From positions 203,422,001-203,486,000 of the forward strand of contig NC_067403.1 in the NCBI RefSeq assembly GCF_016432865.1: a stretch of DNA of 64,000 nt, read 5' to 3'. Positions 48,179 to 63,530 of the stretch are shown here, piece after piece (position 1 is the stretch's first letter; every line of letters starts with the position of its first letter). The notes under the pieces were generated by a model that did no database searches, was not told where the DNA came from, and saw only the letters and a program-made list of their open reading frames with translations. This DNA comes from Antechinus flavipes (taxonomy: Eukaryota). A program made the translations under genes and the position numbers.

Positions 48179-48344
48179 CAGTATCATTAATATGCTGTTT
48201 GATCCAGTCAGTGAAAACAGTGACACTAGTGTAGACACCTGGATAATTAATCCTTCCACAGCCAAAGCCCCAGCTGGTTATCCCAAAAAGGGCATAAAGA
48301 CCTGAATCTTCAAGGGAGCAAACCAAGGGACCACCTGAGTCACC
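48179..48344 (-). CDS. OVCH2: OVCH2-like exon with catalytic Ser (GDSGGPLVC...SWGFGCG...YPGVYT...WIKQHINDT)
   Basis: Acceptor atgcttag, phase 0. GDSGGP, SWG and PGVY motifs. Putative phase-1 donor G|gtatgt at 48178. Read-through would instead stop at 48102. Confidence 0.92.
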
Positions 48345-48706
48345 CTAAGCATATGAAAGGGAAAAAATGTTAAATAATAAGGATGAGTAGCTTAAAGAAT
48401 TAGAATGCCACAGGGGATCTTATTCCAATGTGTCTTACTGAGTCTAAAGGAACACATTAAGAACGGCCCTTGCAGTCTTATCTCATTTCCTGTTTCTTCT
48501 AAATTCCCAGCCAAAAGAAAAAAATAGTGCAAAAAGATCATCTCCTTTCTTTTAGCTCTGTCTCCCCACCATACCCTGAAATGGAAATTTTCTAAGAGTT
48601 CTCTGTGCCCTTGGAGGGAGAATTCTTTGGAAAAAGCTCAGCTATCCAAAATTAATCAACAGAGATTGGGTGTGTGGTTTGAGAACTGAATATGACATGA
48701 GCTTAC

Positions 48707-48858
48707 TGAGCAAGAATCCTTGTCTCCTTTAGAAGGGAACCCAGCACAGAACATCCTCTGAGATACCCCCACAGAGAGATTTTGATAATATTCCTGACAC
48801 ACATCAGAATCAAGGATAGGAACTTCAAGTTGCTGTAATTTGTTGGATTTTTCTCCAT
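48707..48858 (-). CDS. OVCH2: OVCH2-like internal exon (DGEKSNKLQQLEVPIL...MFCAGFPSKGDKDSCS)
   Basis: Acceptor acctttcag, donor TCA|gtaagc, 152 nt, phase 1 to 0. LQQLEVPI, CAG and D189-S-C motifs. Confidence 0.93.
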
Positions 48859-49667
48859 CTGAAAGGTAAAACATTTTGGGTTTTCTTTGTTGTTGTTGTT
48901 GTTAAAGACCAAAAATGCTACCTTTACCACCGTGGCCTCTAGAATTTGGTCCTAATATAATCCACTCAATGACCCAGACTGAGTTCATTTCAGCTTCTAT
49001 CATCCCTCTCGTCTTTACACATCAGCTCCAATTCCCTCTGCAAAGACCAGGAAATTTATCTTCCTCCACTACAATCTCTAGTTCTCACTACCTCTTATCC
49101 CTTTATCCATTCTGCTCTTGCAAGATTCTTCTGCCTAGCCAACCTAAATCTTCCCCCTTTCCCTGTTCAGCACTCATTAAGACGATATCTCTCCCAGTTC
49201 CATATGTTACCAGATTATCCAAACTCCCCTTTGAATGATCCATTCAGCATTCTGGGAAGGGACATTCAAAAACGTGTTAAGGGCCAGAAGAAACTGGAGG
49301 CTCTATGCCATAAGATTGAAGCACAACTCCATATATATTTTAAGAAAACTGGAGACACTGCTCTGGACTTTAAGAAGAGTATTTTAAAGGAAAAACAATT
49401 GTCCTTGCCCACAAATTACCTCAGTTAGAGACAAAACACTGAACTAAATGGACACAGTGTGGTCTGACTGAGTGGGGTCCCTTCCCACAGAAGCAGAGCA
49501 GGAAGGAGTATTTGTGGTTGTATATGAACCATAGTTCATATTGGCATGAGTAGAAACGAACAGAATGGCCATGCTTCAAGGACTGATGCTATTAGGTGGA
49601 CAATAGCTAGCTCCCTATGAAGCTGTTCTACATGTGGACAAAATAGAAGAAAAGATTTCATACAGAC

Positions 49668-49863
49668 CTAGATTATCAATCCCCCATCCAGTGACCACAC
49701 ACATGCTGGATGATGGTATTTCTTGACCTTTCTCAGGAAGACACACTGGATGAACATAGTGATTGAACTGAAATGGTTCAGTCATTTGCAAGAGAGCAAT
49801 ATCATAGTCCATTGTGGTTCTGTCAAAGGCTGGATGAATCAAAATGTGTTTTATTGATCTTTT
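49668..49863 (-). CDS. OVCH2: OVCH2-like internal exon with catalytic Asp (KRSIKHILIHP...DYDIALL...PVCLP...VTGWGIDNL)
   Basis: Acceptor cctcttag, donor G|gtctgt, 196 nt, phase 0 to 1. DIALL, PVCLP and TGWG motifs. Confidence 0.93.
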
Positions 49864-50875
49864 CTAAGAGGAAAAAAGCAAAATGAGAAACCTTCCAAAG
49901 TAATGGGCCCAACAACAAGTTACTACTGACTCAGTACTTAACTGAAGTTCAAGACATACAAATGTTGAAAGCAACATAACCATCCCACTACTGCAAAACT
50001 CCGACTTATAGAATTGAGTGTTTGACTATTTTTTCATCATTTTTGATCCATAATCTTGATTCCATGAATATGTAGAAGCTTTTGAGAATCTTCTAACAGT
50101 ATAAATTAATAATTGATCATTATAGATATAGAGTCGGAAAAAGAGATCATTTAGTCCAAGCCCACATTTTACAAGAGAAGAAACTGGGATGCATAGGTTA
50201 ACTGACTTTTTTTAACACACAATTGGTGTTTGTGACAGGTTTCAAACACAGGTGCTTTGACAATAAATCTAGAACCCCGTTCACTCTGAGGGTGTAGGAT
50301 ACTCCCATTTGAGAAAATGTTATTTTTGTGTCATTGGAAAAGGATGGCCTAGTAATTAACTTCCCATGGTCACATGGGAATGTGTCAAAGTCAGTATCTG
50401 ATTCTTAAGTCAAGACCATAACCACTACACTATACTGTCTCTCAGCACTGCCTCTATCATCACTAATAGACTAGGGACTGGAATTTTGATTTCATGATTG
50501 TAGCAAACTCCCACAAAAGGAAATTCCTCTACCCCCAAAAATGGGCACCTTCTATGCAAGTAACTTGTCTAGAACCAAATAATCAAGATGTGTCAGAAGT
50601 AAAATTTCAACCAGTCTTCCTGGCTCCTGCTGTAACTCTTTACCCACTATCCACCTGTCATATCATCACTAACATGAGAATTCAATGCCTAAAATCTCTT
50701 GCCTGAAGTTAGAACTACCTCTAGAGTTCAAAGAGAATATGCAATAGAAGATGACAACTGGGGCTAAAACATGTCCATTTCTGTCTCTTGCCACATGTCA
50801 GCACTAAATGCATTCAAGTTGCATGGTACCCAGATAGTATTAATCTGTGGGGTATTTGAGAAATATTCCTTTTAA

Positions 50876-51010
50876 TGTGACGATCACGCTAGCACCCAGG
50901 ACACCCAGAATCAGCCAGGGTCAGGATAAGCAAAAGTCCTTAGTCTTTATTCTTGTGCTTTAGGGATAGAAGTAAAGGGGATGGAAGCAGAATCTCCGCA
51001 GCCTTCTTAT
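50876..51010 (-). mobile_element. Truncated ERV LTR 3' end
   Basis: TG terminus (CA on the minus strand), AATAAA on minus at 50946-50951, retained CpGs. Confidence 0.5.
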
Positions 51011-61099: not shown

Positions 61100-61745
61100 T
61101 ATAATTTCCTCATGAGAATAACTACCACTGGAAAAATGTATACTAACTATGCACAGAGAAAAATCAAAGTAGTTGAAAGATATATATTACTGAGATTGCT
61201 GGATATATATATATATATGATTGCCAACTCATTGGACAATTCCATCAGTATATATATCTCAGATAGGTGTTATAGACAATGAGAAGAGCCCAGAATAGAA
61301 TAGGAATAGATCAGGCAAGATCCCAATTTGAAAGGTTATTTCGTACTTCCAATGATCCCAAGCTCTTCACTACTTAAAAAAAGAATCTTTAATATCAATA
61401 ATTTCTCACTGATGTAATATAGATACAAATCACAGAATATAATGATCTCAGAATGCTGGATTTGCAGGTGCCTCAAAAGACAATAGAAAGTCAAATGGAA
61501 GTTGTAAATAGATTGCTGATGATTTGGATTTGAGAAGCATAAAACATATCATCAATAAGATGAATGGCCAAAAAAGGAAGTGGGCCAGCCATGTAATAAG
61601 AGTGAGAGATTATACAGAAATAGCCTAAATGTAGCACTACTTAGCCAGAAAGTACTAAAAAACCAGAAGGCTGCCAATGCAATAGCTATATCCATCCACT
61701 AGCAGGGGATTATGGAAAGAAATAGATGTGATTTGTATAAGATGA
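61100..61745 (+). mobile_element. Degraded RTE LINE 3' portion
   Basis: aggaagtgggccagccatgtaataagagtgagagat encodes an RTE-type KWAxHVxR motif. Confidence 0.6.
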
Positions 61746-61759
61746 GTTCCATTGCCATA

Positions 61760-62275
61760 TCACTTATTGTCTATTGGACATTTCCAACTGGATTTCCCAT
61801 AAACAATTCAAATTCAGCATTTGAATGAAACATATTTCATTATCTTTTCTCAAAATTCTCTCTTCCTAACTAGTCTACTTTTATAAATGGATGACTATCT
61901 TTCCACTTATCCAGGTTTTCAACCTTAGAATCATCTTCTAATCATCCATCTCCCTCACCATATCTAATCAGTTGCCAAGTTATGTCAATTTTACATGCAC
62001 TTCTCTCCATGGAGACTGCCAGCACCTTACTTCAAGCCTTCATCCCCTTTCACCTGACTTCAAATAATTTCCTCCCTGGAGTTTCTCACTTTTTCAATCT
62101 ATTCTCCACATAAATGTCAGTCATCTTCTTGCCTTAAGGTTCAAATACAAACTCCTCTTTGAGACATTTAAAGCCCACTATGTTCTTGCTTCAGCTTATT
62201 TTCCAGGCTTTTATATTTGTATCCTCAGCACCCAACACAATGCCTGGAACACTGGAGACATTTAATAAATGCTTT
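61760..62275 (+). mobile_element. L2 3' end
   Basis: Ends cacaatgcctggaac...atttaataaatgct, the L2 tail. Confidence 0.65.
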
Positions 62276-62853
62276 GATAAGATTAGTTTTGTATCTGTAT
62301 CAGTGAAGGAATACTGACCTGGATGAGACCACTAATATATTTAAAATAAAAACAAAAATGATATTTCCTTTTAATAACACATGTATATATACATATATAT
62401 ACATATATATATATATGTTTTCCTAATACCATCCTAAAGCCAAATCTCATCAGCATGTCCACATCTTATGAAATGTTTATAAGATATATGAAATTCCAGA
62501 GGTCATTAGTCAATGATAATTATAGTAAGGAGCTTGCATTTCTGTAGCATTTTAAAAGATATTATATGCATTATTTCACTTGATCCTCATGAAATTTAAG
62601 TTAGGGATAGAAAATCTTTCTATCCTAAATGTAAATATGAGGAAATTGAGAGTCAAACATGTTTGGGATTGATGCAATGTCACACAGGATCAAGCTGCTA
62701 TTCAAACACAAATCTCCTGACTTTTTTCTACTACCCCAAGTAATCACTCAACATTATTTTCCAATTTGTTTCTCCATACATCTTTCAGGTCTTTATTTAG
62801 AACTCTATTTGTGTCTAAAATCTCTTGTATGACCTTCAACATGTTATTCTCTT

Positions 62854-63043
62854 CAGGGGTCCTCAAACTTTTTAAATAGGGGCCAGCTCACTGTCCCTCA
62901 GACTGTTGGAGGGCCGGACTAGAGTAAAAACAAAAACTTTGTTTGGTGGGCCTTTAAATAAAGAAACTTCATAGCCCTGGGTGAGGGGGATAAACGTCCT
63001 CAGCTGCCACATCTGGCCCACAGGCCATAGTTTGAGGACCGCG
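62854..63043 (+). mobile_element. Non-autonomous OC1/OposCharlie1-like hAT MITE
   Basis: Starts caggggtcctcaaactttttaaa...tcactgtccctcagac and ends tagtttgaggaccgcg (degenerate TIR). Identification by recall of the OC1 consensus. Confidence 0.75.
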
Positions 63044-63343
63044 TCTAATTCTTTCATGTTGATGAGTTTTGTCTTCCTGGAAGCAAAAGCGGCAGGGGAA
63101 AATAAAGGGGACTTCACAGTCAGAGAAGGAAGTTGCTACAACTCTTTTGATAACCCATGTGAGCAAGAAGGAAGGAAATAGAGAGATCCACAAGAAAGAG
63201 CAAAAAAAGACATCATAAGATGAGGCTGTTGGTCTAAGTAGTTGTCAGTGCTATCATGACTTGAAGGAATGAAGGATTCTTGGAAGACTGAGGGTTAAAG
63301 ATAAATGCAACATAAATCAACCAGACCTTCTCATTGTACTTAC

Positions 63344-63530
63344 TTATCATTAAAACAATGGGCAGCTGTGACCACCCAGCTCTTCCCAATCACTGTTCCC
63401 CCACAGAGATGTTCTGCAGCAATCTGCAGGCTGACCTGCCAAGGCCAAGATCTGGCTGCTGCTGGCTGTCCTCCCACAATCCTGCTGAAGAGAAACCTGG
63501 GAGGCTTGGATGCTGCTCCACAATGGTCAT
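63344..63530 (-). CDS. OVCH2: Ovochymase-2-like protease, internal exon: linker, activation site and catalytic His ([17 protein letters not shown]|IVGG...[10 protein letters not shown])
   Basis: Acceptor ttcctag (phase 1) and donor AA|gtaagt (phase 2). Contains [17 protein letters not shown] and TAAHC motifs. The [11 protein letters not shown] context matches my recollection of the second protease domain of avian OVCH2. Orthology is by recall. Confidence 0.9.

Follow-up and report, generated by a model that had tools for sequence, protein, structure and literature searches.

The window, a 64,000-nucleotide stretch of Antechinus flavipes DNA, carries on its minus strand five exons that together encode a trypsin-like serine protease domain (Table 1). 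A base-by-base reading bears out what the earlier note on this DNA had claimed: the exons have AG/GT borders and compatible phases, the first is entered in phase 1, and no stop or frameshift interrupts the frame. Their lengths sum to 187+70+196+152+166 = 771 nt, or 256 whole codons and a split codon at either end; the length of 257 aa given in the earlier note is thus essentially right. Since about 7% of random codons would be stops at the base composition of the window, a frame that stays open through five exons is far beyond chance.

Table 1. Exons, key residues and a possible tail of the protease domain (arrows mark splice or cleavage positions)
Feature	Position	Strand	Description	Borders or codon
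Exon 1	63530-63344	minus	187 nt, enters in phase 1; linker end, propeptide Cys, SR↓IVGG, His57 in TAAHC	acceptor ...cctag↓AT, donor AA↓gtaagt
Propeptide Cys	63522-63520	minus	exon 1	
Activation site SR↓IVGG	63486-63469	minus	exon 1	
His57 (catalytic)	63360-63358	minus	exon 1	CAT
Exon 2	58856-58787	minus	70 nt, 23 aa; between His57 and 70s loop; W.V.AG.HDLTE motif	ctag↓G ... CAG↓gtaggg
Exon 3	49863-49668	minus	196 nt; Asp102 and Cys122	cttag↓AAA ... CTAG↓gtctgt
Asp102 (catalytic)	49803-49801	minus	exon 3	GAT
Cys122	49743-49741	minus	exon 3	
Exon 4	48858-48707	minus	152 nt; Cys168-Cys182 pair, Asp189, Cys191	ttcag↓AT ... TCA↓gtaagc
Asp189 (pocket)	48718-48716	minus	exon 4	GAT
Exon 5	48344-48179	minus	166 nt, leaves in phase 1; GDSGGP with Ser195, Gly216, Cys220, Gly226	cttag↓GGT ... 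ACTG↓gtatgt
Ser195 (catalytic)	48338-48336	minus	exon 5	TCA
Gly216	48269-48267	minus	exon 5	
Gly226	48239-48237	minus	exon 5	
Possible alternative C-terminal tail	48178-48102	minus	frame open for 25 more codons (GMYEEK...) to TAA if the last donor is unused	

The domain

The earlier note had described a full S1 domain; the triad and Asp189 were found at the positions it gave, and the propeptide Cys, activation site, Gly216 and Gly226 that it listed were located as well (Table 1). The triad motifs TAAHC, DIALL and GDSGGP are present, the last of these with Asp194 and with Gly193 of the oxyanion hole, and the activation site lies in the context FSR↓IVGG. Ten cysteines (positions 1, 42, 58, 122, 136, 168, 182, 191, 201 and 220) complete all five S1 disulfide pairs. 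The Pfam Trypsin profile (PF00089) is covered collinearly: exon 1 matched profile positions 1-46 (E=3.6e-17), exon 3 positions 69-129 (1.5e-14), exon 4 positions 135-176 (1.4e-6) and exon 5 positions 178-220 (1.4e-14), all of them scoring over the cut-off of 20.6 bits. Profile positions 47-68, left uncovered, correspond to the 23 residues of exon 2, which is too short for Pfam and aligns with the matching sauropsid exon.

The N-terminal protease domain of OVCH2 (d1) carries a 12-residue insert between Cys220 and Pro225 (GW.NN...RGSPG). In the alignment this insert is missing from the window domain, where the 220 loop reads GCGRINYPG, in line with the absence of the WRNN...SPG insertion claimed earlier. 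The nearest solved structures are those of Arg-specific proteases, namely plasma kallikrein, TMPRSS6, TMPRSS2 and enteropeptidase. From these relatives, and from Asp189, Gly216 and Gly226, cleavage after Arg or Lys is predicted. We conclude that the five exons encode a complete, active-looking trypsin-type S1 protease domain that has been kept intact.

A counterpart in the Tasmanian devil

The same domain is present in another marsupial, yet it is not annotated there as OVCH2. The Sarcophilus harrisii protein G3WF48 (UniProt; P0300), an unnamed "Peptidase S1 domain-containing protein" of 267 aa, matches the window at about 98% identity over exons 1, 3, 4 and 5, with one difference in exon 1, three in exon 3, and 100% identity in exons 4 and 5. 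Such near-identity by itself marks the window as marsupial DNA, probably dasyurid. Among the best 120 matches per search, no other marsupial model of the domain appeared. G3WF48 is a partial, standalone automatic model in which the true exon 2 is skipped and intron translated instead; its tail derives from sequence matching 48012-47938, and it has neither a start Met nor a signal peptide. Over the approximately 231 true codons, devil and window differ by four amino acids and no indel, whereas the approximately 50 wrongly translated intron codons contain four differences and two frameshifting indels. This contrast between exon and intron weakly indicates purifying selection.

Placement within the OVCH family

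When exons were matched individually, the best matches came from the second protease domain (d2) of OVCH2 in sauropsids, at 61-66% identity and with bit scores that sum to 325-380. Exon 1 is 59-69% identical to residues 553-621 of bird OVCH2, exon 2 is 40-50% identical to residues 620-644 of the Halcyon senegalensis protein (P0014), and exons 3, 4 and 5 reach 62%, 63% and 68% identity to bird OVCH2 d2. The next groups were shark OVCH2 d2 (53%) and OVCH1 d2 (49-52%; buffalo and marmot, 49%), and the domains of TMPRSS9 are about 47% identical. Identity of the window exons to OVCH2 d1 is 34-46%. Best matches to OVCH1 had been named as an outcome that would speak against an OVCH2 assignment, and sauropsid OVCH2 d2 came out ahead.

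In the domain tree, where devil G3WF48 with its mis-modelled stretch served as a proxy for the window domain, the devil protein was sister to sauropsid OVCH2 d2 (95/86) and stood outside the OVCH1 d2 clade (100/98). Its branch length resembles those of sauropsid lineages.

Gene structure points the same way. Duck OVCH2 d2 is encoded by five exons whose borders and phases equal those in the window: exon 2 has 70 nt and exon 3 has 65 codons in both species, the acceptor of exon 1 has the same position and phase, the exon ends FN.K↓, ..Q↓, ..DSC.↓ and ..T/S↓G are common to both, and the last donor, ggtatgtatg, is identical. The architecture of sauropsid OVCH2 is protease-CUB-CUB-protease plus a short tail, and the d2 motifs are kept in 79/89 sauropsid OVCH2 proteins.

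With a probability of roughly 75%, we read the five exons as the 3' part of a marsupial OVCH2, encoding a C-terminal trypsin-like d2 that would be the orthologue of the bird, crocodilian, turtle and squamate domain. The earlier assignment to OVCH2 d2 and not OVCH1 is thus upheld by identity, tree, exon layout and the lack of a 220-loop insert. From the same comparisons we infer physical linkage to the OVCH2 CUB exons, which would lie beyond position 64000; no exon was found in the 470 bases upstream of exon 1, which are all that the window holds there.

The 3' end and downstream flank

The coding sequence would end either in the read-through tail listed in Table 1 or, as in sauropsids, in a short last exon located farther 3'. 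Among bird models, some close with a mini-exon of 7 aa and others with a GMYEK-type read-through tail, and turtle and gharial models have a terminal exon of 15-16 aa. We found no AATAAA on the minus strand from 48179 down to 44602, and no recognisable terminal exon either. In a turtle, a CYB5R-like gene (FAD_binding_6 + NAD_binding_1) follows 7.6 kb after OVCH2. Exons and motifs of such a gene were not found at 1-48179 of the window (about 48 kb downstream, with an N gap at 16374-16549); intergenic distances in marsupials may simply be longer.

Comparison with known OVCH2 systems

The closest known system is OVCH2 d2 of sauropsids (Gavialis gangeticus P0233, Natator depressus P0232, Anas platyrhynchos P0210 and Halcyon senegalensis P0014). 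These domains and that of the window share R↓IVGG, His57, Asp102, Asp189, GDSGGP and all cysteines, and neither has the 220-loop insert. Sauropsid OVCH2 has only a short tail after d2 and no third CUB, and the window likewise shows no CUB exon 3' of exon 5. The two differ in that the window introns are 5-10 times longer and residue 192 is Ser in the window domain and Thr in sauropsid d2.

Xenopus laevis oviductin (ovochymase-2; P79953, P0077) belongs to the same family, of which it is the member examined experimentally, and its second S1 domain likewise follows two CUB domains. It reportedly has a third, C-terminal CUB as well; a Pfam scan of a frog relative (P0059) gave two CUB stretches. Xenopus d2 is only 48% identical to the window domain: Ser replaces His57, EQSGS replaces GDSGG, and the R↓IVGG cut site is missing. 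Because these three elements are absent, Xenopus d2 is a pseudoprotease, which makes sauropsid OVCH2 the better comparator. The frog precedent invoked in the earlier note therefore stands for the two-protease architecture but not for the activity of d2; the known activity is that of d1. Lindsay et al. 1999, as cited in PMC4525147, describe conversion of the egg-envelope protein gp43 to gp41 by Xenopus oviductin. A catalytic-looking d2 is common to the marsupial and the sauropsids, and not to frogs.

Mouse and human OVCH2 are described as one protease followed by two tandem C-terminal CUB domains (PMC10850435), as had been claimed for the human protein. By this published description the presumed orthologous gene has no second protease, and among the best 120 matches per protein-database search there was no d2-like eutherian model. 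The mouse protein is a secreted epididymal trypsin-like protease required for male fertility (PMC10850435). The intact domain, the published architecture and the lack of a eutherian model among those matches all favour the earlier proposal that the marsupial keeps a d2 absent from human and mouse; the part that concerns linkage to the rest of OVCH2 we take from comparison with sauropsids.

Alternative explanations

By gene fission, the d2 exons could have left the OVCH2 transcript and become an independent protease gene, driven by a promoter and led by a signal-peptide exon of its own. Standalone secreted S1 protease genes, too, typically have a phase-1 acceptor immediately ahead of the propeptide, as exon 1 does, and the only marsupial model among the best matches is a standalone protein. 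That model, however, lacks a start Met and signal peptide and is visibly mis-modelled; the 470 bases upstream of exon 1 contain no exon that combines an ATG, a signal peptide and a phase-1 donor; and the acceptor agrees in position and phase with that of duck, whose exon follows CUB2/linker exons. We therefore regard such a fission as unlikely. It is distinctly improbable that the exons are a silent relic, intact but no longer spliced into mRNA after a functional loss so recent that lesions have not yet accrued. Such a relic would fit the missing terminal exon and polyadenylation signal, but all 256 codons remain open, none of the splice sites departs from the canonical form, and the full set of catalytic and structural residues is kept more than 300 million years after the sauropsid split. 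The far better conservation of exons than of adjacent intron in the devil comparison, and a branch length like that of sauropsid lineages, also argue against it.

That the domain belongs to OVCH1, or to another multi-protease gene such as TMPRSS9, is hardly credible. The sister group of OVCH2 d2 is OVCH1 d2, which does share about half of its residues with the window domain, and when devil G3WF48, again as a partly mis-modelled proxy, was forced into OVCH1 d2, the tree was 16.3 lnL worse and the rejection only marginal (p-AU 0.048). Yet a genuine OVCH1 domain from a mammal would be expected to lie nearest to mammalian OVCH1, and the values for buffalo and marmot fall well below those for sauropsid OVCH2 d2, with which the tree also groups the devil proxy. 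The TMPRSS9 domains stand at about 47%.

Proposed biology and evolution

If the exons are indeed the 3' part of OVCH2, S1 chemistry suggests that d2 would be synthesised in zymogen form, as part of a mosaic protein that is secreted, and activated by cleavage after the Arg of its FSR↓IVGG site. The activated domain would stay tethered to the upstream part through a disulfide between the propeptide Cys and Cys122, and would cut after Arg or Lys. Its substrates are probably extracellular proteins of the reproductive tract, by analogy with d1, which acts on a ZP glycoprotein of the frog egg envelope and in epididymal sperm maturation in the mouse. An egg-coat or sperm-processing role of marsupial d2 is speculation.

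In the published descriptions, OVCH2 of human and mouse stops after its second CUB, so the loss of d2 most likely happened on the eutherian stem or later; with an intact, catalytic-looking d2 in a marsupial, that loss would fall within the eutherian lineage. As a tentative extension, to which we give rather low odds, a live d2 would be ancestral, kept where egg coats derive from oviduct or uterus (sauropsids and marsupials), silenced independently in frogs and chimaeras through decay of the active site, and deleted in eutherians together with the loss of the coat. Marsupial d2 would then be a dedicated enzyme for processing the egg coat or sperm surface, with no eutherian counterpart.

OVCH2 is being studied as a target for contraception, and through the orthologue in the frog the egg envelope becomes penetrable to sperm. 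The result is incremental comparative genomics, with no new mechanism or kind of system. It offers a concrete, testable candidate for marsupial-specific egg-coat or sperm processing. Xenopus, the classical model, is a poor guide to d2 given its catalytically dead copy, and the automatic annotation of devil G3WF48 as an unnamed fragment would be corrected.

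An intact S1 protease domain in five exons

The earlier note proposed that the window encodes an intact S1 protease domain in five in-phase exons, and the sequence bears this out. Read on the minus strand, all five exons have a pyrimidine-rich tract and AG directly before them and GT after them. The five exons sum to 771 nt with no stops and no frameshifts, and their phases are compatible throughout, a Lys codon being split at the junction of exons 1 and 2 and an Asp codon at that of exons 3 and 4. The Pfam Trypsin profile was matched collinearly by exons 1, 3, 4 and 5 (E = 1e-6 to 1e-17). 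The positions proposed earlier for His57, Asp102, Ser195 and Asp189 were exact on the minus strand, and the first exon does enter mid-codon, in the predicted phase. Besides the disulfide between the propeptide Cys and Cys122, four further S1 disulfide pairs were located. The S1 domain is demonstrably complete, lacking none of the catalytic, pocket, activation or disulfide residues, and it is intact in at least two marsupials.

Exons and S1 residues of the protease domain in the window (a slash marks the activation cut)
Feature	Position	Strand	Details
Exon 1	63530-63344	minus	187 nt; donor gtaagt; enters in phase 1
Exon 2	58856-58787	minus	70 nt; donor gtaggg
Exon 3	49863-49668	minus	196 nt; donor gtctgt
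Exon 4	48858-48707	minus	152 nt; donor gtaagc
Exon 5	48344-48179	minus	166 nt; donor gtatgt; leaves in phase 1
Propeptide Cys	63522-63520	minus	partner Cys122
Activation site FSR/IVGG	63486-63469	minus	exon 1
His57	63360-63358	minus	exon 1
Asp102	49803-49801	minus	exon 3
Cys122	49743-49741	minus	partner of propeptide Cys
Asp189	48718-48716	minus	exon 4
Ser195	48338-48336	minus	exon 5
Gly216	48269-48267	minus	exon 5
Gly226	48239-48237	minus	exon 5

A second marsupial copy

When a duck model consisting of the second protease domain only (P0151) was used as the query, the sole mammalian relative among the matches listed in the 160-509 aa class was P0300 (UniProt G3WF48), a Sarcophilus harrisii protein of 267 aa that is unnamed beyond the label "Peptidase S1 domain-containing protein". 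The devil copy of the domain is thus already known, as an unnamed fragment in UniProt. A word search with exon 3 for short relatives returned one weak match and no fragments from other marsupials.

The P0300 model is faulty. The true second exon is missing, and in its place the model includes about 26 codons of the intron upstream of exon 3 (window 49915-49994), a stretch that requires two frame changes relative to the window; its C-terminal 24 residues are drawn from non-conserved sequence downstream of exon 5 (window 48012-47938). Across the true exons, about 231 codons, the two species differ by four amino acids (one in exon 1, three in exon 3; exons 4 and 5 are identical) and by no indels, while the intron translated in error has four differences and two frameshifting indels in about 50 codons. 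By these few differences, the window belongs to a marsupial near Sarcophilus but distinct from it, probably a dasyurid. With this intron as a crude neutral yardstick for exon conservation, the comparison is weak evidence for purifying selection, which may have acted on the domain between the two marsupials.

Relationship to OVCH2 and OVCH1

Homology searches were carried out exon by exon, and the per-exon alignments were summed without joining the exons. Exon 3 was searched against 1.84 billion cluster representatives, followed by BLASTP of each exon. The top BLASTP match for all five exons was a single protein, P0014 ("OVCH2 protein, partial", from the kingfisher Halcyon senegalensis), collinear at residues 553-822 and with the architecture Trypsin-CUB-CUB-Trypsin. 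A word search with its second protease domain (domain 2) retrieved OVCH2 of birds, turtles, gharial and squamates, all about 810-850 aa long and with the same four-domain layout. When several ovochymases were aligned to the window with tblastn, every exon was 59-68% identical to domain 2 but only 34-46% identical to the first protease domain (domain 1). The lack of a domain 1-type insertion, claimed previously, was confirmed by alignment: domain 1 of OVCH2 has the 12-residue 220-loop insert GW.NN...RGSPG, and OVCH2 domain 2 is without it, as is the window domain.

The earlier note assigned the domain to OVCH2 rather than OVCH1, and the summed exons agree, with 61-66% identity (325-380 bits) to sauropsid OVCH2 domain 2 against 49-52% to OVCH1 domain 2, buffalo and marmot OVCH1 included. 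Identity was 53% to chimaera OVCH2 domain 2, 48-49% to that of frogs and about 47% to TMPRSS9. If the domain came from OVCH1, it should lie nearest mammalian OVCH1; since it does not, such an origin is disfavoured. A tree of 61 S1 domains of OVCH2, OVCH1 and TMPRSS9 was computed with IQ-TREE in careful mode, with the devil protein P0300 standing in for the window. This proxy was sister to the sauropsid OVCH2 domain 2 clade (support 95/86), which is where a mammalian orthologue should fall, and its branch was not longer than the sauropsid branches. The OVCH1 domain 2 clade, with mammalian OVCH1 within it, stood apart at 100/98. Constraining the proxy into that clade cost 16.3 log-likelihood units (p-AU 0.048), a marginal rejection that is weakened by the proxy's mis-modelled stretch. 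On identity, the separate clade and the AU test together, membership of OVCH1 was rejected. The reading of the five exons as domain 2 of a marsupial OVCH2 has, in our estimate, a probability of roughly three in four.

In the same tree, two database names disagreed with the grouping: both domains of the Latimeria "ovochymase 2" (P0041) fell with OVCH1, and both domains of "ovochymase-1" from the bichir Erpetoichthys (P0040) fell with OVCH2.

Gene structure and surroundings

Domain 2 of the duck OVCH2 locus (L001) is likewise encoded by five exons, with borders equal to those of the window. In both, the acceptor lies two bases ahead of the codon that precedes the propeptide Cys, the second exon is 70 nt long and ends in Q, and the third exon holds 65 codons. 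The first exon ends in FNSK in duck and FNDK in the window, and the fourth in DSCT and DSCS, respectively. The last donor, exon G plus the nine intron bases gtatgtatg, is identical in the two species (window 48169-48179; duck L001 34028-34038), reflecting either an unusually constrained donor context or an old read-through isoform. Sauropsid OVCH2 proteins end 7-16 residues past domain 2 in a tail encoded by a mini-exon; several bird RefSeq isoforms instead translate through the last donor, giving GMYEK-type tails. Reading through the exon 5 donor in the window adds 25 codons, to 48102. Downstream of exon 5, neither tail motifs nor poly(A) signals pointed to a convincing terminal mini-exon, and no AATAAA was recognised nearby.

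The 470 bases upstream of exon 1 (63531-64000) contain no exon and no signal-peptide candidate, such as a separate protease gene would carry, and with tblastn, proteins of shark, coelacanth and frog revealed no third CUB or other OVCH2 exon elsewhere in the window. The CUB and domain 1 exons must lie beyond it. In a turtle, a gene of the cytochrome-b5-reductase type follows OVCH2 after 7.6 kb; the duck locus has no neighbouring gene within 10 kb. A motif scan and the turtle neighbour exons gave no match to CYB5R2 in the 48 kb downstream, a stretch that includes a run of N (16374-16549). This run, 176 bases long, adjoins a CT-rich tandem repeat of 12-14 bp units (16572-16706); a downstream gene could have exons concealed here.

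The active site across vertebrates

The two-protease architecture of OVCH2 is already published for Xenopus and annotated across sauropsids; a literature search for OVCH2 with marsupials or opossum found no paper. What is new here is the recognition of the domain as marsupial OVCH2 domain 2, its intact and, judging from its residues, catalytic-looking state, and the finding that frogs are the wrong comparator for it.

In the alignment, domain 2 of amniotes (sauropsids and the marsupial) keeps R/IVGG, TAAHC, Asp102, Asp189 and GDSGGP, and by a strict pattern test all four domain 2 motifs are kept in 79 of 89 sauropsid OVCH2 proteins. In domain 2 of Xenopus laevis oviductin (P0077, UniProt P79953) and two other frogs, Ser replaces His57, EQSGS or GQTGS stands in place of GDSGG, and the Arg-Ile cut site is lacking; the chimaera domain has Gln for His57 and Val for Ser195. 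His57 is lost in all four of these frog and chimaera proteins (P0077, P0055, P0059 and P0153). They look like independent pseudoprotease conversions in two lineages, with the triad retained in amniotes. Thus, the earlier statement that Xenopus oviductin has two proteases holds for architecture but not for catalysis, the frog domain 2 being without His57, GDSGG and the Arg-Ile site. Since the motifs are kept in amniotes and lost in frogs, a live-looking second enzyme is common to the marsupial and sauropsids.

By S1 protease chemistry, domain 2 would be secreted within a mosaic zymogen. Cleavage after Arg15 would activate it, Ile16 then pairing with Asp194, and the disulfide between the propeptide Cys and Cys122 would keep it tethered. 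Its P1 preference would be for Arg or Lys. Of the structures solved, none is of an ovochymase; the closest are those of plasma kallikrein, TMPRSS6, TMPRSS2 and enteropeptidase, all of them specific for Arg. Frog domain 1 is reported to trim the egg-envelope ZP glycoprotein (PMC4525147). Mouse OVCH2 acts in the epididymis via its single protease domain (PMC10850435).

The best 120 matches to bird OVCH2 domain 2 consisted of sauropsid OVCH2 and TMPRSS9, and the absence of mammalian OVCH2 from them is only suggestive. Neither the bird nor the duck domain 2 query returned a eutherian domain 2-like protein among the matches listed. This result, together with the mouse and human literature (PMC10850435), points to a probable loss of domain 2 in eutherians.

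Other features of the window

Rfam and tRNA scans were empty. Two frames, 591-887 and 6495-6743, resemble LINE-1 ORF2 by eye, with no Pfam match. A perfect (GT)25 microsatellite (58507-58557) lies in the intron that follows exon 2, some 230 bases past the exon. The intron between exons 2 and 3 also holds a LINE-1 remnant, a 142-aa open frame at 53259-53687 (minus strand) whose match to the ORF1 RNA-binding domain is weak and sub-threshold (Transposase_22, E=4e-4). In the same intron, a tandem duplication with a 1263-bp period (54927-57596) comprises two full copies and a diverged third piece. Over one 300-nt block the copies share 99% identity, and the duplication is either very recent or an assembly artefact.
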